A stretch of 64,000 bases of DNA, from contig NC_087258.1 in NCBI RefSeq assembly GCF_037042905.1, positions 2,604,001 through 2,668,000 on the forward strand, given 5' to 3'. Under the pieces are notes generated by a model, which saw nothing but the letters and a program-made list of their open reading frames with translations, was not told where the DNA came from and made no database searches. Position numbers and translations under genes: made by a program. Positions within the stretch are counted from its first letter, which is position 1; every line of letters begins with the position of its first letter. The stretch comes from Lytechinus pictus (Eukaryota). Positions 24,738 to 45,355 of this stretch are shown here, in pieces.

Positions 24738-24886
24738 CTTCTTTTTGAGTTCCACACTGATAGCATTAGCCTCTTTGAGTAGTATAGCATTGCCCCATAG
24801 ATCATCCCGGATTGATGTAAACCTGTAAAATCTCCATTTTCTCCAGACCCACATCGCAATCTGGTATTCCCTGGCAGTCCATTGAC
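24738..24886 (-). CDS. KIF1A/B (unc-104): Exon 11 ([49 protein letters not shown])
   Basis: ccttag|...|gtacga; 149 nt, phase 1-0. Confidence 0.96.
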
Positions 24887-30712: not shown

Positions 30713-32542
30713 AGAAACTTTTTTGAAGGGGGAGGTGTCAGGGAAGGGACCAAAATTGGGGGGGGGGGTATATTGGGGTCAGAAGGGCGATAGTAGTACT
30801 ATTTCCTAGGGGGAACTATTAAAAATATCTGAACTATTTTATGGCTCAGCTGGTTTCTACCAAGGGTACATTTTGCTAGAGGTTGGGGTAGCCATGGGGG
30901 AAACGAGGGGCAAAGTTGGAAATACAACATCAGTGAAACCAAAGAATATTGAAATAATTCACTTATAAAGTACACCAGGCATTCATTTTTCTTCCAAGAA
31001 ACCGCATATTTGTTTTTTGGGGGGGTTTGTTTGGGTTTTTTTATTGGGGGACGTTTCTTGAAGAATTTTGCCAGTAATCTTCACGACCATATAAGCTACT
31101 GGATTTGCATCTGATTGGCTGAGAACAAATTTGTCAGTGTAAATCATTGACAAAACTCTTCATGAAATGCTCGCCTGGAATGTGCTAATCAATCTTACTG
31201 CCAGGGATGATGACTAGAAAGTCATAAAAAGTTTTGTCAATCCATCATCACTCAGCTTACAAGATATATTCAGTGTCTATAATTTTTCCACATTGCCCAT
31301 AACTAAACTTATCTAGCTTTCAAAGCATGAAAGTGGAGGCGCTATACAAAAATAATATTTCTATTTTTAAAAAGTACTTGAAGTGCAGCTTGATGTCCAG
31401 TACTGACCACACAGAAATGTTGTTAGCACATGCAATACACTAACAGAGGCCCTGTTACAACCGGTAATGTGGCAGCGATGCCTATTGTTACAACAATACA
31501 TTACTTACACACTGAAATAAATGTTTCAACTTTACAATCTGAAAGATGCGACTGGGCTTACTGTTTGTGCTCTGTTAGAGTAACAACGCTTCTGTGTGGC
31601 CGGCACTGGTCAATAAGAGCATCCAAACCAATTGAGCTCAACTCATGCACATGAACATATTGGCCTCATGGGTAAAACATCAAGCTTTCATCTACATAAT
31701 TAAAAAAATATTAATCCCTACATGTTGTTTAACAATAAAAGAAATGGTCTACATATGTAATCGATCTTCCACCCCATTCTCTCCATTACACCCCCTCCCT
31801 TACTGACCAAACCCCTTCCTCCCCCTTCAAGTTCAACAGTCTACTGTGGCCCATTATTTTGATGGGAATAGCAGATGTCTCGGCAATGGTTCCCTGACGG
31901 AGATTAATAACTCGAGATGTTATGGAATGCCGCTACCAGTTAGGAGTCCGCTTATCCCTAGCACCTATCCATACCAAATGTTGTCATCTCAGATACAGAT
32001 GAATGCAATGGATGTGTCTGTGTGTAGCTGTAGTATTGGAAATACTTGTGCAATGTGTATTGATTGTGAGCATCACTAGAATAGGGTCAAGGTGTAGATG
32101 AGAGCAAACCAATAAATGATCCCATTAATCTCATGCCTATGACGAAAGCATCAAATGTCAAACCAGGGAAGTGTAAATGAGGGAGGTTTCTATACTAACA
32201 TCTTTTTTTTCATTTGATTCTGATGTGCAAACCTGCTTAAAATGCAAATTTTGGTTCATGTGTACTTGTAAAAAAAATCAAATTCAAATTTGTATTAAGT
32301 TAAAAATATGATTGAATTTGAATGTGATTTCAAATTTGAATCAAAGATCCAAATCCAAAACCAAAACCAATTCCAATTCCACTTGAAAATTCATATTCAA
32401 TTTCATTATTGATTCAAAATGAAATAAAAGCCTCTATGCAAGTTCATGGTAAAACAATCTAATTCAATTACTGTGTTTTTGTGTAGTGGTACACATGCAA
32501 AAACTAATCTGCATGTATGTTTCCAATAAGTTAAGACTTTAG

Positions 32543-32603
32543 TAACAACCCACCTACATAACCACAAATACACTGCTCTTTGTTTTTATTAGAAAAATTT
32601 ATT
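32543..32603 (-). terminator. Candidate intronic polyadenylation site
   Basis: Minus strand reads AATAAA (32598-32603), AATAAA (32585-32590), then a GT-rich element gtgtatttgtggttatgtaggtgggttgtt. Confidence 0.4.
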
Positions 32604-35274
32604 GCATCTCTTAAAAATTACATTTACAAAGCTTGATAATACCATAGACCTATACAAGTACTTATAGACAGCCTTCCTATACGGCATAACAATTTCACAT
32701 GTACATTTTAACCAGTACTGTTTTATATACTGAATGGACAAATGGAGAAAAAATAAATATACTATTCAAATGATCTATAACATTTCAGTCCTACTTTAAT
32801 ATCAACTACATCCTCCAACAATATTTCAAAGGTTTGTGGTACAATAGATTTCCTTAGTGTGTATGCGTGAATCTCAGAGATCACATTCAAATATCTGTCA
32901 GCATATGAGCTTGAAGTTAAATTGGTTTTGTTCAATTAATCAAAACTTCTGAATTTTAAACTTCTAACGGAATGAAATGTGTCCCATAAGGACATTTAAA
33001 AATGGATCAATGAATGAACTGACAATACTCTGCATGTCTACATGTATATATATCTAAATTTATGACAAAGTTAATACTTGTTTTAGAAACTGTAAATAAT
33101 AAATTTTAAAGTGATTTTACTCGATCTCCAGTTGAATTGGGATTTTTTCATGAAGATGATTAGGAATATAAAAGCATGATTACCAACATCTGCAAAGAAT
33201 ATTACAATACATCCCATTAGCAATCAGAATGAAAACATACATTTTCACTTCTTGAACTTCACAGACCGTTCAACACATCCTCAAATAAATTTTCAGAGTG
33301 AATACTGTTACACATATTATAACACACACAACGTAGCAAAACCAATTAATTTTTCAAAAAGCAGTAAATATTAATGAATGAAGTACAAAAAATGGTTGAT
33401 TCATACAAAAATTTAATACAAAGGAAGCCAATTTGCATTTTTACAAATAAACACTTTTCTTTGAGGCTTTAGAGACACTCTCCCTTTGGATGAAATCATG
33501 CATATTATTTTGAACTGTAGAATGGAACTATTAATTGAAATGATAATTTATCATGGAAAAGCTATAAGGTTGAAAAAGCAGATTTTTTAATACCAAGTAT
33601 GAAATTTTATAGGATATTTCATTTCCATTGAATAATTATGGACTATAAAAATCTTAATATTCTTTTCAAGAGAACTTGAAAGAAGGGATAAGATGGAACG
33701 TTATACGTTAAGTACCTATCATCTCAAGCTAATATATTAAGTACGTATCATCTGAAAACTTGGGAACCTAAAACATATTTAGTTCAACTATGAAACTACA
33801 ATTATTTCTTTACAAGATCTTGATATAATACAATATGAAATAATATTACAAAGGTGCAAAAACATGGTACAATATTGCAATAGCCCGTGAGGTGGATAAG
33901 CATTTGACAACATATAGTCCCGGTCTGGAGACTGGAGAATATATATATTTCAAATCAATATGAATACATCACTGAATATTATAATTCAATAAATAATAGG
34001 TATGACTATATATATATATATATATATAGTTCATGAATGATGTTATGATGTAGTACAAATGAAGGTAGATAATGAGTCAACTTAAGAATACAATCAAGGC
34101 AATATATAATAAGAATTTCCCAAGAGGTCCGGCAATTAAAGCGAAAAAGTACAAAAGGCATTTTTTTATTTTCCAAGTCTTTTTAAATTCAGCAATTCAA
34201 TATATATATGAAGGTTTCTACTTCATGGTTAGATGTTGATTTATAAAATGATTAATTTTTTTTTATTTGTCTGTGAATTACTGAAATAAAATATAATGAG
34301 CATTAATCCACGTTTCAATTTCTAAGTTACCATAATGATCATGTTGTTTATAAAATCATGATAATTTGTCTGCCAATTGGAAATTAGAAACAAAATGAAA
34401 TTGTACATTTGTATGATTTTCAGCAGAGATTTTGATGGATGAAACAATTGAACATAAGACAACAAGTAATGTACACAAAAAGAACCTAAAATTATTGATC
34501 ATTAAACAGGAAAATAAATAGCTATCTAATAGAGAAATACACACAAATCAAGGCAGGATTTCGCAAATCACAAATTCAGTAAATCAAAAAAAAAAAAAAG
34601 GACGGTACATAACAGAAAATTGAATATACAAAGAACACAAGACATGCACTTGAAACAACAATAATCAAGATACATGGTCCACACAATATCTGAACAAAAA
34701 TAATTCTTTTCTAGAAGTCCATCATGATGAAGAGAAGAAAAAAGACAACTAAAAGACTATCAAAGAAACAATTACAAAGAAAAATAAATAGACTATTCTT
34801 TGGTCTCGGCTCATTCAAAATCACCATCATCATTCATTTCATACACTGAAACATGGATCTAATCCATTTTTTTGTCTAAACTTGTCTGAAAGATTCACAA
34901 TGTCAAGCGGCTGTAACAATCCTCAGGGGAACATTTATAAAGGACTTGTCGGATGTTTTATCAACAAAGTCTGTTTAATCCGGCAGATACCACAGTATCT
35001 GTGCTTCAAAGACAATTAAAATCAAGGAAATTTGGAAGATCCGACAACTTGTCAGATGATAAATGTTGATGAAACCCTCCCTGAAACGCTAGATGATATT
35101 TAGTCAGCATATACCAGCAGACAGAGCCTTTTAATCATTTATTCCTACTTCTTGACATCAAGAATTGCCAATGATAGCAAGAAAAAATATATGCGATATC
35201 AAGAATTACGATTCCCCCTGTCAAGGAATGAATTCTCAATAGGATTGAATGATAAACAGCATGCCATACATAAG

Positions 35275-35489
35275 TTGATTGATTGGTGGGGATTTTTTAC
35301 CTGATTGCTAAGAAAGCTTGAATGCTTGTAAGCAAGCAACCAGAGGACCGACGGCTTAAGGTCCTCTCCGAAGGACCTGGTAATGAGGATTAATGCCTTA
35401 CCAAAGGGCACTAGCGCACCAAGTGTGAATCGAACCCGGGTCACCAGAATACGAATCCCCCGCTCTACCGACTGAGCTATCGCGCCTCC
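35275..35489 (-). mobile_element. tRNA-derived SINE, second family
   Basis: Head GGAGGCGCGATAGCTCAGTCGGTAGAGC...GGTTCGATTC followed by a non-tRNA body GTGCCCTTTGGTAAGGCATT and an (AATC)n tail. Confidence 0.85.
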
Positions 35490-36999
35490 TCAGCTTACAC
35501 TGGCTGTACATGTAATTGACTGGGCGTAGCAGCCTCCCTGAACCTACCCATTTGACTACATTATGCTACTCCAAGCAAGTGGATCATTAGTTTTATTTGA
35601 CCACATACAATGTACATGTAGCTCTCCTTCCTACAACACAAAGCAATCCTCAGGTTTCTGTCATCGTCCCTCAAAAAATGTCATCTTTTTTTAGCTTTAA
35701 ATAATACTCAACAGCATGAACAAATCATAGAAATGCACTTGCTCATGATACTAAAATATGAAAATGATACATAAAGGTAGTGAGATAGTGATACAATGTA
35801 CATGTAGCATGACAAAGAACAGTTGTTTAAGGATTATCCTCTATAATAACCAAATATTGGTCAGCTTATAATTTTTCAACCATTTTTTCATAAACAAATG
35901 TCACACAGTTCTCTTCAAATATCCTGCAATGACACACTCACATTCACACAAACATCAACAGAATATTCTGGATTCAATAGATTCATCAATCCCGAATTAT
36001 AACAGAGCATAATTGTAAATATTCTGCATTACAAAACCACACATTAAACCTTTTATTGGGGGGGGGGGCTGAGATGCTTTTTGAATTTTTTTTATCATAT
36101 TTCATTCAAATTGCTGTTTGATAACGTTTGAACTGCTATGATGTGTATTACTATTCAAATGTAGCAGAACGTTTTCTATCCTATGACTCCTAAATCTTTA
36201 ATTCTTCTGTCAACAATAAAGGTATTTTTTTTCTATACGTGAACAGTAACATCATGCTAATTCACTGCTACAATTCAGTTTACAAGTTGCTAAATATGTA
36301 TATAATGAATTCAATTCAGCTAAAAGTTTGTTTGCAAATGGGGAATTAAACTAGCTCTCAACATAGAGGTTTTTAAATTAATTCTATTGAAACAGAAAAA
36401 AAGATCTGTGTTCATGTTTTCATAATAATAGCACATTCCAAGCACGAATCCCATGAGGGTGACACTTAAGTACACAAGACATTAAAATACAATCTCCCCA
36501 AAGTTTTGGCACTTTTTTGACAATTTGTGACAGTTTGGAACTGAAAATGATCAGCATGGAACTGAAAAAAACATGGAACTTATTTTATATCATGCATAGA
36601 CAAACCCTACATACATGTAATATGGTCCCTTTTAAAAATCAGAAATGTACATACACAGGAGATAAGTGGGTGAAGGGGGGGGGGTATGATCAAAGAGGGC
36701 GCATTCTTCTTTCTTAAGCTCATTAAACCTTTTTTCTGTGCTCATCAAACATAGAAATAAGCACTTGGAGACATAATATGAGATTGGAAGTGACAGGAAA
36801 TGGCATCTCACACAAAATTTTGAAATGAGCCTCCGCATTTAGAAAGTCGGAACTTCCATTCCCCTCTAGAACTCCTTCTCCTACCCCCTTAAGTTCACGT
36901 TGGTCCGTGTCTCACCTCTACCTTGCTCCCTCCCTTGCCCTCTCCCTTCACCCATTCCTTGCCCCCTTCCCTTCCCTTACCCCTCCCCTTCCCCCTTTG

Positions 37000-37124
37000 T
37001 CATCTGAGCTCCGTCATGAGCACCAGGTAACAGCTGAGGAGGAAGAGGAGGGATATAATGAGCATAGAGAAATAGTAGATGTACCAAAATAAGACAGCCA
37101 GAAATAAAATGGTCAGCAACTTAC
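37000..37124 (-). CDS. Candidate alternative 3' extension of exon 10 encoding a hydrophobic C-terminal tail (SKLLTILFLAVLFWYIYYFSMLIISLLFLLSCYLVLMTELR*)
   Basis: In-frame read-through of the exon 10 donor; about 36 consecutive uncharged residues; 28 of 40 codons end in G/C in otherwise AT-rich intron context. Confidence 0.55.
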
Positions 37125-37239
37125 TCTCCAGGCCGTCATCATCGTCGTCTTCGCAGCTGAGGTCACCCGACACACTGCCGGAGAGGAGGCTCTGCGTCTC
37201 CATCTGCTTCTGTAGGGCCTGCAGTTTGCTCTCATAATC
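37125..37239 (-). CDS. KIF1A/B (unc-104): Exon 10 (DYESKLQALQKQMETQSLLSGSVSGDLSCEDDDDDGLE)
   Basis: ctaacag|...GAGA|gtaagt; 115 nt, phase 0-1. Confidence 0.95.
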
Positions 37240-37937
37240 CTGTTAGTGGAAGAAACATTTTTACGGTCAATGGACTGACAAAGCTAAGCAAAATAAAATA
37301 AAGGTATTTGTATCACTATAGATTAAATGAATAGGATTATAAAGAATGGTGGAAAAATGAATCTCTCCAAAGCTCTATCTTGCAGGTATTGCAACCACCT
37401 TAATATGCATTTGTATTAGTGTAAGAGGCATAGTCACCGTCATTAGGCGGGCAAAACTATGAATGATAACAGAATAATTTACATAAATAATATCAATATA
37501 ATGAATTGCCTCCCCCCCCAAAAAAAAAATAAAAAAATAGGGGTACTTCTCTACTCTCTTGTGACCATTACTCCATGTTACAAGCTTGATTGAAGATATA
37601 CATGTACCTTACCAAATGGAATGCAACATTTTCATTTTAAATTTTAGATTAAAAACAAATTTCCCAAAAATACTGAGCCATTTCTATACATGTAGATTAA
37701 AGTTTCTTACACAATTAAACATGCAAATTACCTACTATATACATGTGTGTACATCATTCTAACTATAATTGCATAATTCCTTTATGAAGCTTTTTTTCAG
37801 CTAACAATTTGGGGATTCAGATTATCTGTTTGAATGTTTCTATGTTAGATATGAAGTGAGGTAACTATTTCTCTTAGGTGGAATGGTAAATTGTCAATCT
37901 TTACAGGGCTAGATAAAATACATATAAAGATATGTAC

Positions 37938-38010
37938 CAGTCTCTGTTGCTCTAAAAGTTGGTCTGCTTCTTCCTTCTCTTTCTTGTACTGCATCTCCAT
38001 GGCAAGTAAT
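37938..38010 (-). CDS. KIF1A/B (unc-104): Exon 9: CC2 (LLAMEMQYKKEKEEADQLLEQQRL)
   Basis: ttccag|...|gtacat; 73 nt, phase 2-0. Confidence 0.95.
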
Positions 38011-39784
38011 CTGGAAGGGATGAGGGTAGTAAAGAGGTGGGATAAGAGGGTCGATAGGGGATAGGAAGTGAGGTGAAGGGGGTGGAAAAGGGTAAGGAGG
38101 CATGAAGGGGGGATAAAAAGGGGCAAGTGTTTTAATTGGGTAAACATTAATGGGATGCATGAAAGAATAAAAAGGAACAGCGAGGAAGAGTGTAGTAGAG
38201 AGGAGTGAGAAGGGGGTCAATAGGGGATAGGAACGGGTGAAGAGTGAATGAAGGGGGGAGGGGAGGGAGAGGGAATGAAGGGGAAAGAAGGGTGTGAATG
38301 GGGAATGAAATGGGGGTGTGGTGTTTGAATTGGATATACATAGAATGAGATACGTAAATAAAAACAAGTTATAAAGGAATAGTGAGGAACAGTTTAGAGA
38401 TATGGGACAGAACAGGGATGGGGGAGCGAGGGAGAAGTGAAAAGAGAAATAGATGGAGAGGGGGGTAGGGTAGTCATAAGCAAACAAATGAAAAATTAAT
38501 ATATGAAAAGGAAGAAGTACATGTGGGGGAAAAAGTATAGAAAAAGAAACCATGGGGGAGGGGTAGAGGAGTAAACGAAGATGCCGAGAACAACAGTGGG
38601 ATGGTGCAAGATGGTGAGTACATAAAGAGACATGAACAGAATGACAGACACAAAGGAAAGATGTCATACAAAGAATATATGATAAACAACAAGGAAAGAG
38701 AGACAGACATACACAGTATTTTGACAATGATACAATTCACCATTACAATTACACAGAAGACAAAGGCATGAGTGAGCGATGCAACATAGACAATAGAAAG
38801 TGAAAGAGGAAAAAATAACAATATGGAAATATATTTTTAGTCTCAACTTCAAATGAACAGAATTTATAGCATTCTCACTGAAACCTGATACATGCTGTTC
38901 AAAATCAATTTTACAAAAACTGTTGCATTACTTTTACTCTACTAGGTCAATTTACAAATTACTGAGGCTGATCAGCATCACTACTACAGAAAGATATATG
39001 CATGTAATAATGTACATGCCTTTCTGCAAACTAATTCCCCAAACCTTTTTAAACGTTCTTCTCCAATTGCAGTATCAAGGTACCAGAGTGTTCTTTTCTC
39101 ATATAAGGATAACTCTCTTCTATTTCTGTCAAACATTGTTCCATCTTCTCCTTGATACCATTTATTTCTGCAACAGCTAATATGTACTATCTTTATGAAT
39201 AGACAAGCCCTCCCTCATGTATCCATCGTTCTTTATTTCATTATCCTTTGTGATCTCTAGAAATTCATGGAAATGCATAAATTGGTGTCGCAGCAGTTCT
39301 GTAAGTCATCAGAACTATTTCTCAAACTATTCTATCACCTACCTTTTCTTTCATCTTTCCTTCAGTCCTTTGGCCTATTTTTTCTCAACAAGTATCTTTT
39401 ACTCAATTCAAATGCCTTGATTCTATACTACTCTCAGATCAAGAATTGTTTGTACGCTATTCGCATATCATCACTTTGTCTCTCGTTCACTTTTCATTAC
39501 TCTTCCATACAGTTACCTTTCTCTATCTCTTTCTAGATATCAATATATGTAACTTGATTTTGTAGGCATTCTTTCAGTTGAAAGGACCAATCTCTAATGA
39601 CTTCATCTCATATCTTATCATTTCCCTTTCCTTTCAACAATCTTTCAGTCCCCTACCTTCTTTCCATCTATTCTTTGATGTAAATGCCCTGATGCTGAAG
39701 CAGTTCTTTCTGCGCAAAGGACCAATCTCTTATGATTTTCTCTCGTAACCCGACTTTCCTATCAACTATCTTCCATTTTCTTAC

Positions 39785-40034
39785 CTTCTCTCCATCTCTT
39801 CTTTGATATCAATGCCCTGATGCTGAAGCAGTTCTTTCTGCGCAAAGGACCAATCTCTGCTGTCCTGCTGATCAGGCTTGCCTTCCGTATCGCCACCATC
39901 GCCTTGCCCTCTCGTATCCTGGACCCCTTCTAGGACCTGCCCTTGGACGGAAGATGAAAGCTCCCTCTGTTGTCTGATCTGTTCTGGATTGGTGAAGCGG
40001 AACACGTGGTGCTTCCCGAGAATGATGCGGTAAC
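39785..40034 (-). CDS. KIF1A/B (unc-104): Exon 8: FHA end and CC2 start ([18 protein letters not shown]...[23 protein letters not shown])
   Basis: ttacag|...AG|gtaaga; 250 nt, phase 1-2. Confidence 0.96.
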
Positions 40035-41090: not shown

Positions 41091-41340
41091 CACTAACTGT
41101 AACTAGTTGAAGGAGTTTCCAAATCAGATGTGAAACCCCGTTCTCGATATAATTCTACATCACGTTTGAATAAAAATGGTTCAACTTTAAATGGAGAAGA
41201 ATGCTCGTACTAACTTGATTCAAATATGAAATTCTACTTAATTTCATATTCAGTTTACAAGAATTATTCCAATTTGTAAATAATATCCTTCCATAAATAT
41301 TTCTCATATTTGCAATGAAACTAAGTGAAGATACACTTGC

Positions 41341-41516
41341 CGCTTAAGATTTGAGTAGGTTCTGTGATCTTGGAGCCGTTGATGTAGCACATACAACCAT
41401 CAAAAGGTTTTAATGTGACCTCACTATCCTTGTTTTCAAAGATACAATGTTCCTCGTTGATATATGAACCACTTAGCTGGATGTCTTGGGTTACATTGGC
41501 ATCAGATAAACCCACC
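41341..41516 (-). CDS. KIF1A/B (unc-104): Exon 7: FHA core (VGLSDANVTQDIQLSG...TEPTQILS), followed by a GC donor
   Basis: aacag|...AGCG|gcaagt; 176 nt, phase 2-1. Confidence 0.92.
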
Positions 41517-41799
41517 CTGTTAAAAGATGATGAATAATCAAACAATTGTCATATACATCTTCTTGAATGTTTTTTTTTTCATTCACCCGATGAACCTTCA
41601 ATCCTTCCTTCCATCCTTCAATCAATGAATTCATTCCTTTCGTAATTCATTCTTATAATCATTCCTTTTTTATCAATTCATCCATCCATCCATCAATCCA
41701 TCCATCCATATATCCATTCATTCATTCATTTAATCATTAATTCATTTATTTTTTCATTCCTTTATGGATTTATGGATTTATTTATTAATATTTTTATCA

Positions 41800-43767: not shown

Positions 43768-44435
43768 CTACAACAACAAAAAACATGGTCAATATTATAA
43801 ACCTTCTTTAACTCATTCAAAACAATCATTTGAAACCTTCTGTGTTCAGCCCCTAGTGTTGGCAAAATTAGTATTTTTCATTACTGCATTTCTACTCATG
43901 TTTCATTCAATTATGCTATCAACTTCTCAGACTCCTACAAAGACAATACCATCTATTGTCAATATCATAATTCTTTACTTATTCAAAATAAGCACTTGAA
44001 ACCTTTGATCTAAGCCTGTTCTTCAAATTGGCAACACCTGTATTTTTTTCTATAATTACTGCATTTCTCTTTTTTAAAATCTGAGCTGGCCGCAAATTTT
44101 CAAAAATCCAGCAAAAGAATTTTTTTGGTCCGATGGTACAAAACAATTAGCTAAACTCAAAATAATGTTTGTATTAAAAAGCAATCTATTGCTTTTTCCA
44201 GAGTCTGATGTCTTATATTGTAATCTACATGTATCTCGTATTTCCCATGAAAGATAAAGAAACAAACATGTACCTCCAAACCCTGGAAACCAAGAAAGTA
44301 CGACAAATCGGAAGACATCGGCTGAAGATACGGACATTGAAAAACTTACTCAAAACTTATGAACAGCTTTATGAAACACCCAACAGGACTAACTCTATTA
44401 AATAAAGACAAAGAAAGGTGTGAAGTATTAATCAC

Positions 44436-44685
44436 CTTTATTCTATCAATAGCATCTTCTTTGACAGGTAGCTGGATCTTCTTGGGCATGGAAAGGTTTG
44501 GTGTGGGGGCAGCATTCACGTTGCTCACAAAGTTGTTGATGTTGTTGAGGTCAACGTCGATGCCCTCTGTCTTCAAGATGACCTTTAACCGATTGACCTC
44601 TTCCTTGAGTTCACGGATGAGACGGGCGTTGGGATCTTCATTGACAATAGCCTTGCAGACGATGTTCTTGGCTCTGTCTGCATAT
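44436..44685 (-). CDS. KIF1A/B (unc-104): Exon 3: neck linker and neck coil ([30 protein letters not shown]...IDRIK)
   Basis: tacag|...|gtgatt; 250 nt, phase 2-0; within ORF 44346..44723. Confidence 0.96.
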
Positions 44686-44959
44686 CTGTAAAAAATAACA
44701 GCCAACACAAAAAGTAGGAACATGGGATTTTAAAATGTTTTATACCCCATCCAATTTGGCACAATGAATTGATTTAGCTTAATCACATTTAAATGAGTAT
44801 TTATTCTGTTCCAAATCATCAAACGTCATCTGGTAAATGGTCCTTCTATGATGACATATCACCAAAGGTACATGTAATTCTCACTCACATTTCTTTTCTT
44901 TCTTGCCTTTCGATTTTCTTCTCGATCACTCCACCATTCTACAGTCCCTTTCAGGACTA

Positions 44960-45166: not shown

Positions 45167-45355
<189 letters not shown>

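Follow-up and report, generated by a model that had tools for sequence, protein, structure and literature searches.

Does a kinesin gene of the sea urchin Lytechinus pictus encode, besides its long canonical motor, a short form that ends in a hydrophobic segment of its own? The question is raised by a stretch of 64,000 nucleotides (contig NC_087258.1 of assembly GCF_037042905.1, positions 2,604,001 to 2,668,000 of the forward strand), the whole of which was analysed and is referred to here as the window, and which carries a kinesin gene on its minus strand. All positions below are those of the window unless a contig is named. An earlier note, made from the sequence alone, had proposed that skipping the 5' splice site (donor) of exon 10 adds a hydrophobic tail to a motor protein cut short after coiled-coil 2. 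Our analyses indicate that this tail is very probably a real, selected coding end, held under protein-level purifying selection in at least four echinoderm-like lineages. The most likely role of the tail, judged from its sequence properties, is that of a tail-anchor-like membrane anchor. The elements on which the question turns are the following.

37125..37239, minus strand: exon 10, 115 nt, encoding the end of coiled-coil 2 and an acidic run, and ending after base 1 of a Ser codon
37119..37124, minus strand: donor of exon 10, GTAAGT in the context A/GTAAGT, with its GT at 37124-37123; the hexamer also encodes part of Ser-Lys, tail residues 1-2
37003..37124, minus strand: coding extension obtained by read-through, which together with the A at 37125 makes 41 sense codons (37125-37003)
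37000..37002, minus strand: stop codon TGA that ends the read-through frame, present in the window and in the metagenomic contigs L003-L005, L006 and L007

The reading frame beyond the exon 10 donor

The earlier note had stated that the frame stays open for 41 more codons when the donor is skipped, and the TGA is indeed found at 37002-37000. The junction codon, A/GT, encodes Ser whether the RNA is spliced or read through. The run of about 36 consecutive uncharged residues was also recovered, the longest stretch of the tail free of D, E, K and R being 36 residues. The count of 28 codons ending in G or C was right, and the denominator of 40 given with it was not; there are 41 codons, 68% of which end in G or C. 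The GC content of codon positions 1 and 2 is 0.34 and 0.24, respectively. For comparison, the rest of intron 10 has a GC content of 0.34, and in exon 10 the third position is G or C in 29 of 38 codons.

By the sequence of the window alone, such a frame is only mildly unusual for a gene with many introns: of all GT sites on the minus strand of the window, 12% precede at least 41 open codons in that phase, and 2.7% of these open frames are equally hydrophobic, which gives a joint frequency of 0.33%. The tail is judged to lie beyond chance because of the comparative evidence, not because of the window sequence alone. The tail region is single-copy in the 812-Mb genome, as judged from a 251-nt stretch and from a genome profile search that returned no second copy (the G-rich part of this stretch, taken alone, had one weak match elsewhere), and this rules out a repeat or transposon as its origin. 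No in-phase GT inside the tail is conserved in the alignments (A1, A3). The extension is therefore terminal rather than an internal exon, and the possibility of an internal exon that leaves by an alternative donor inside the tail was dropped for the same reason.

Relatives for which DNA is available were obtained from genomic contigs of the Tara Oceans marine metagenomes (L003-L005, L006 and L007). The first query was a 67-residue open reading frame (ORF) that starts at an ATG, lies partly in exon 10 and includes the entire tail. It found two proteins (95 and 105 residues) at 96% identity, which are encoded on contigs L003-L006. These contigs are genomic: in each, exon 10 is preceded by a polypyrimidine tract with a CAG acceptor, and the stop is followed by intron sequence. 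They are not contaminants from the same species, since their synonymous divergence (dS) from the window is 0.64-1.09 and their introns cannot be aligned with it. Intron 9 is unalignable among the lineages, identity being at random level immediately upstream of the exon 10 acceptor, and identity in 30-column blocks is again at random level within 30-60 nt past the stop, about 40 nt being semi-conserved. The donor hexamer GTAAGT is invariant in 5 of 5 aligned sequences (A1, A3), and donor, frame and TGA are kept in three further lineages with DNA. The earlier note had named early stops, or the lack of a hydrophobic frame at the orthologous position, as findings that would tell against it; what the relatives have instead, in all three lineages, is the same frame, the stop and the hydrophobicity.

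The ratios of nonsynonymous to synonymous substitution rates (dN/dS, NG86 method) were as follows.

Window against L003: tail 0.033, exon 10 0.068
Window against L006: tail 0.015, exon 10 0.052
L003 against L006: tail 0.067, exon 10 0.034

Among these closer lineages the values for the tail (0.015-0.07) are similar to those of the constitutive exon 10, which bears out the earlier suggestion that the tail is selected coding sequence. When substitutions are counted as minimal events on a tree of the three taxa, those in the tail are distributed over codon positions 1, 2 and 3 as 1, 1 and 15 (P = 4.5e-6), and those in exon 10 as 2, 2 and 16. Of the 17 events in the tail, 15 are synonymous, against an expectation of 26% under random change (P = 1e-7).

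When a profile of exon 10 plus tail was run against 1.84 billion representatives, it added the protein P0004, which is encoded on Tara contig L007. Compared to the window, L007 has 20 of 38 identical residues in exon 10 and 18 of 20 in the first 20 residues of the tail, where synonymous sites are saturated. In the second half of the tail 8 of 19 residues are identical (dN/dS 0.88) and the hydrophobic character alone is kept; dN/dS for the tail in this comparison is about 0.2. The tail of L007 has 42 codons, ends with TGA and is followed by a G-rich stretch. A fifth lineage is represented by P0005 (from an ENA metagenome contig of 7418 nt), which has the same tail with W at the position of the stop. 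Either the stop has been lost in that lineage, or the gene was called under a code in which TGA is Trp. Past this W, P0005 continues for at least 28 Gly/Lys/Arg-rich residues through the G tract.

With regard to further relatives, the profile search of the 1.84 billion representatives, which is blind to long isoforms hidden within clusters, returned P0002, P0003 and P0004 only. Word-indexed searches, in which a length filter and 50% clustering hide long isoforms, returned P0001, P0002, P0004 and P0005 only. Searches of the JGI metagenomes with the protein pattern and with the conserved DNA pattern returned nothing.

A separate observation concerns L003 (about 925-981) and L004 (about 583-632), where the last few codons of the tail, with TGA and G-rich tract, are present a second time about 165 nt past the real stop. 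By its look this is a local duplication, and it has no counterpart in the window.

The gene, its transcripts and the candidate 3' end

The predicted product of the gene is a kinesin-3 of the KIF1A/KIF1B/UNC-104 type. Matches to the Pfam families Kinesin, Kinesin_assoc and FHA follow one another along the minus strand in the order expected for a kinesin-3, more KIF1A-type motifs are found in exons at about 24.8, 23.3 and 22.7-22.2 kb, and the canonical KIF1 fragments P0006 and P0007 from fish show 76% identity over the shared region. Intron 10, which separates exon 10 from exon 11, measures about 12.2 kb. The relevant parts of the gene are listed here in the order of transcription.

45167..45355, minus strand: open segment containing the exon for the C-terminal end of the kinesin motor domain (Pfam PF00225 Kinesin, E 1.1e-17, profile positions 271-319/327)
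44349..44723, minus strand: open segment with the neck/Kinesin-associated exon (Pfam PF16183 Kinesin_assoc, E 7.4e-11)
41324..41545, minus strand: open segment with the FHA-domain exon (Pfam PF00498 FHA, E 8.7e-07)
39784..40005, minus strand: exon 8, encoding the end of FHA and a linker (5' boundary approximate), from tblastn of the L. pictus model P0003 against the window and from the ORF list
37938..38010, minus strand: exon 9, first part of coiled-coil 2, with acceptor and donor in the sequence and with spliced RNA reads
24738..24886, minus strand: exon 11, the canonical continuation (KIF1A-type region after coiled-coil 2), from the sequence

The tail is already public in RefSeq, as an unremarked prediction. 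P0003, the closest protein in the public record, is XP_054768469.1, 'kinesin-like protein KIF1B [Lytechinus pictus]', an automated RefSeq model of 221 residues in which exons 8, 9 and 10 are spliced and whose C-terminus is the same tail. It agrees with the window at 100% over exon 10 and the tail, and differs from it at two positions in exon 8. Its first 35 residues correspond to parts of intron 7 (41136-41098 and 40140-40006), where the window has a stop and a 15-residue (45-nt) indel. Since the window has no open frame for this N-terminal part, XP_054768469.1 is probably a partial model with an artefactual start. The introns of the window and of the genome behind the RefSeq model differ noticeably, the exons being identical or two residues apart.

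RNA was examined over 32150-38100 in three stranded runs of RNA depleted of ribosomal RNA (rRNA), all with the same species label, and in an older run, X1, in the form of contigs. The depth of exon 10 in the three stranded runs was 10, 19-23 and 30-33, and the sense depth just past the donor (36926-37124) was 3.2, 1.3 and 6.7, so that unspliced sense depth past the donor amounts to roughly 6-32% of exon depth. Sense-strand RNA thus continues beyond the exon 10 donor, where a complete lack of reads had been named in the earlier note as a result that would speak against its proposal. The sense depth remains at about 1-7 over 1.4 kb past the donor and is about 0-2 beyond a short interspersed element (SINE) in intron 10; in intron 9 it is only 0.1-1.2. 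Reads across the junction of exons 9 and 10 (37937 to 37238) numbered 2, 19 and 21, with one contig in addition. This contig, from X1 (1531 nt), begins in an adapter and covers 37073-37238, with 52 nt of the tail among them; it then continues by splicing into exon 9, departs from that exon at the acceptor and has about 1.26 kb of sequence from upstream of it. Eight untyped runs from two studies were used for word content, and contained 42-90% of the sampled words of 36060-37124, which is above the level of the wider 35500-38200 region. This shows that transcripts exist which are spliced upstream yet unspliced at intron 10. The RNA polymorphisms seen in exon 10, at 37165, 37174 and 37195, are all synonymous third-position changes.

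The SINE-like repeat itself (35135-35532) has an RNA depth of 360-2000 in sense and 40-190 in antisense orientation. Many loose ends lead from it into unrelated sequence, and its reads therefore come from many genomic copies; its minus-strand translation contains a short motif typical of tRNA-derived SINEs.

A read-through transcript would need a 3' end within intron 10, for which two candidate signals are listed.

36052..36057, minus strand: first AATAAA past the stop, 943 nt downstream, a candidate proximal poly(A) signal
32544..32603, minus strand: tandem AATAAA pair (32603-32598 and 32590-32585) with a GT-rich element, a candidate distal poly(A) site

The tandem hexamers and the GT-rich stretch are present at 32543-32603, as the earlier note had described them. 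Altogether, the candidate poly(A) hexamers are those at 36057, 35597 and 32603/32590. The hexamer AATAAA is common in the window, with about one copy per 690 nt on each strand, and five further copies separate the stop from the 32603/32590 pair. The depth summed over the three runs declines from about 6.5 before 35.7 kb to about 1.9 after 34.7 kb. In all four runs the depth is zero over 32150-32547, and an X1 contig ends at 32642; the zero-depth region near 32.6 kb is single-copy sequence. The end of coverage near 32642-32548 is a weak hint of a 3' end, drawn from 400-500 nt. A region of zero depth in all four runs is also present at 37722-37920, in CT-rich, low-complexity sequence of intron 9. 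Zero bins can therefore be technical, and this tempers the reading of 32150-32547. In L003-L007, no AATAAA or ATTAAA was found past the stop within the 151-521 nt of available sequence.

The hydrophobic end and a putative membrane-anchored motor

All 19-residue windows of the tail have Kyte-Doolittle values of 1.6-2.5. For the 79 residues of exon 10 plus tail, AlphaFold2 predicted from a four-sequence alignment one helix that comprises residues 32-78, with a local confidence score (pLDDT) that exceeds 90 where the helix is hydrophobic. The hydrophobic run, which is separated from the stop by 4 residues, forms a single segment at the extreme C-terminus, as in tail anchors. Within its 35-36 residues it could possibly be accommodated as a long or tilted span, as a span with an interfacial aromatic helix ahead of it, or as a hairpin; with respect to hairpin anchors of the reticulon and lipid-droplet class, whose two hydrophobic arms are parted by a turn (often of Pro, Gly or polar residues) and whose ends are both cytosolic, the run contains no Pro or Gly, has a cluster of aromatic residues and Ser mid-way, and is modelled as an unbroken helix from four aligned sequences. 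According to the flank rules for tail anchors, four net-neutral residues after the helix point away from mitochondria and towards the endoplasmic reticulum (ER). Our guess, from the hydrophobicity and the non-basic C-terminal flank, is that the target membrane would be the ER or an ER-derived one.

These data can be joined into the following mechanism. Splicing at the 37124 donor would join exon 10 to exon 11, 12.2 kb downstream, and give the canonical long motor. When this donor is left unused, translation would go on for 41 codons to the conserved TGA, and the transcript would end by cleavage and polyadenylation inside intron 10, which makes exon 10 part of a composite terminal exon. The product would consist of motor, neck, FHA domain and coiled-coil 2, followed by the acidic run, the uncharged helix of 35-36 residues and four polar residues. 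Since a helix at the C-terminus emerges from the ribosome no earlier than termination, its insertion would have to be post-translational, in the manner of a tail anchor, which would leave the motor in the cytosol and fix it directly to an organelle membrane. Devoid of the regulatory and PH-domain tail, the short isoform would be a plus-end motor that is permanently attached to its cargo. In this scheme we infer membrane insertion, topology, organelle, intronic polyadenylation and the linkage of the tail to the motor exons. We consider the mechanism as a whole, including membrane anchoring, to be probable. The broader statement that echinoids, and perhaps echinoderms more widely, possess a natural kinesin-3 that is an integral membrane protein and is chosen by splicing versus termination is one towards which we lean slightly.

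Several observations weigh against this mechanism. The uncharged run of 35-36 residues exceeds the 18-25 or so that are typical of the span of a tail anchor, and the cytosolic flank before the helix is strongly acidic. In rRNA-depleted total RNA, nascent pre-mRNA is expected in the 5' part of a 12-kb intron, and from unspliced reads alone a mature isoform is not separable from the nascent RNA of such a long intron. The share of read-through is a ratio of depths rather than of junction counts, the loose-end rows at the donor being filled by the SINE. Tail and motor exons are not phased on one molecule by the De Bruijn contigs, and neither a poly(A) site nor a poly(A)-containing read was seen in the RNA data examined. 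The searches found no annotated long protein with the tail, and no relative outside the lineages described above, long isoforms being invisible to them. Finally, XP_054768469.1 is an automated model with a start in intron 7, and that start is closed in the window.

In the present understanding, kinesins reach their cargo by way of adaptors, lipid-binding domains or receptor proteins. Canonical KIF1A/UNC-104 binds membranes peripherally, by a PH domain at the end of a tail of about 1000 residues and by adaptors. Compared to KIF1A, UNC-104 and KIF1B-beta, the putative short isoform comes from the same gene and has the same N-terminal architecture, and the canonical form also reaches membranes; the difference is that a 41-residue hydrophobic end after coiled-coil 2 replaces the tail of about 1000 residues. 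Vertebrate KIF1B-alpha and KIF1B-beta share the motor-FHA region, their tails diverge shortly after it, and the cargo changes. Here too one kinesin-3 gene has alternative tails past the motor-FHA region; KIF1B-alpha, however, has a long soluble tail from separate downstream exons, whereas the urchin end is a read-through of a donor that encodes a helix of the membrane type. The switch itself resembles that of immunoglobulin mu, in which use of a 5' splice site versus termination in the next intron sets the C-terminus and the membrane anchor. In both cases a competition between splicing and termination would decide whether the anchor is present. The logic is reversed, since read-through yields the secreted form of mu and splicing the membrane form, and in the urchin gene the poly(A) site is a candidate.

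In reviews, motors are described as attached by way of adaptors, and the tail anchors as belonging to Miro and syntaphilin, not to the motors; these two proteins are held in the outer mitochondrial membrane by such anchors (PMC8077471). They have in common with the urchin isoform a single hydrophobic helix at the C-terminus and a cytosolic N-terminal functional domain. They differ from it in being adaptors or brakes that recruit or oppose motors, whereas in the urchin the motor itself would carry the anchor, and the hydrophobic run is longer. According to a bioRxiv report (10.1101/2021.09.12.459970), which cites Rawson 2014, an engineered UNC-116::TOMM-7 protein, in which a kinesin is combined with an outer-membrane anchor, moves mitochondria into axons. 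As presented there, this construct is like the proposed isoform in that a kinesin is fused directly to a membrane anchor and this is sufficient for organelle transport. It is unlike it in being synthetic, a kinesin-1 and provided with a mitochondrial anchor, whereas the urchin protein would be a natural, conserved kinesin-3 version with a putative anchor. A full-text literature search found no natural kinesin with a membrane span of its own, the membrane-anchored kinesins in it being engineered or in-vitro ones.

If the proposed mechanism is true, it would represent a mode of cargo attachment without precedent among natural kinesins in the searched literature. It would also provide a natural experiment on a motor that is permanently attached and has no autoinhibitory tail, and a switch in which the choice at a single donor, to splice or to terminate, makes an organelle-resident motor out of a regulated vesicle motor. 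The system would be tractable, as microtubule-based movement of organelles has classically been studied in sea-urchin eggs and embryos. The case is also an example of an automated gene model whose odd end points to real biology.

Alternative readings and minor features

Of the competing explanations, the one that survives best accepts that the extension is translated and selected, and proposes that the hydrophobic end is a degradation signal or another non-anchoring element; we consider it unlikely. Such an end might serve BAG6-type quality control of the product of unspliced or prematurely terminated transcripts, or the tuning of motor dosage. Hydrophobic C-termini that arise from non-canonical or intronic translation have been reported as determinants of degradation (PMC12976096, PMC12863090). 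Read-through concerns a minority of the reads. In the comparison of L007 with the window, moreover, hydrophobicity is all that is conserved in the second half of the tail, and a degradation signal would require nothing further. However, this explanation does not account for the conservation of individual residues (18/20 at saturated dS, and dN/dS of 0.015-0.07 over the whole tail among the closer lineages), nor for the precisely conserved length and stop. The hydrophobic end as such favours neither side, as BAG6 clients and tail-anchored proteins share recognition features.

Slightly less likely again is a short motorless protein that starts internally in intron 7-9 and carries the tail behind a partial coiled-coil 2, a small membrane protein that could act, for example, as a membrane receptor or an inhibitor for the full-length motor. 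The sole public model with the tail is of this kind, XP_054768469.1 with its 221 residues and its beginning in intron 7, an in-frame ATG opens the 67-residue ORF inside exon 10, and the present data do not link tail and motor exons on one molecule. Against this, the stop and the 15-residue indel close the N-terminal 35 residues of that model in the window. Moreover, the X1 contig leaves exon 9 at the acceptor and is thus spliced to upstream exons, though contigs merge isoforms. Evidence of a promoter for an internal start was not found, no search aimed at it having been made.

A non-coding explanation, in which the first 125-165 nt of intron 10 are conserved as splicing-regulatory or structured RNA and the open frame is incidental, appears very improbable. 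Its candidate elements are G-run enhancers, a G-quadruplex (G4), or a hairpin between CT-rich and G-rich arms, and they involve the sequence directly past the stop.

36900..36996, minus strand: purine/G-rich tract that starts 4-6 nt past the stop and contains G-quadruplex-type motifs (TRF arrays at 36915-36997)

A G4 motif is located at +5/+6 past the stop in the window, in L003 (769-815) and in L006 (342-365), so that three lineages have a G-rich tract with such motifs directly after the stop; in L007 the motif is not strict. Base pairing is possible between the G tract and the CT-rich codons that make up the tail's second half, and would give a hairpin of 19-24 bp around the stop codon. Among known RNA families, Rfam returned only sub-threshold matches of the miRNA-precursor type at 36980-37053, with 19-26 bits compared to gathering thresholds of 37-96. 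The support for the hairpin is weak (covariation term -0.75 kcal/mol, folding z-score -1.6), and the best-conserved first 60 nt lie outside it. The substitutions follow the codon frame of exon 10 (1, 1 and 15 by position) and not the pairing.

The weakest explanation, a chance open frame in a pyrimidine-rich intron with RNA reads from ordinary pre-mRNA, was initially favoured with some confidence, given that 12% of GT sites have frames as long, that T-rich sequence gives hydrophobic residues, that a purine-rich low-complexity array follows the stop and that total-RNA libraries contain nascent intron reads, but it is effectively refuted by the comparative data, in which frame, stop and amino acids are conserved where the introns are unalignable and synonymous changes are in excess (P about 1e-7).

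Two minor features of the locus were noted in addition. Antisense (plus-strand) RNA reads are present at 37324-37721 and 34538-34736, and odd joints connect 34599 and 37520 with runs of A between them. This suggests two A-tailed repeat copies, whose transcripts either originate elsewhere or run antisense to the kinesin gene. In intron 8, on the minus strand, the 3' end of exon 8 recurs twice in degenerate form (39730-39656 and 39595-39518), with 92% and 58% protein identity to the end of that exon and an in-frame stop in each copy; the copies look like tandem partial exon duplications or pseudo-exons.

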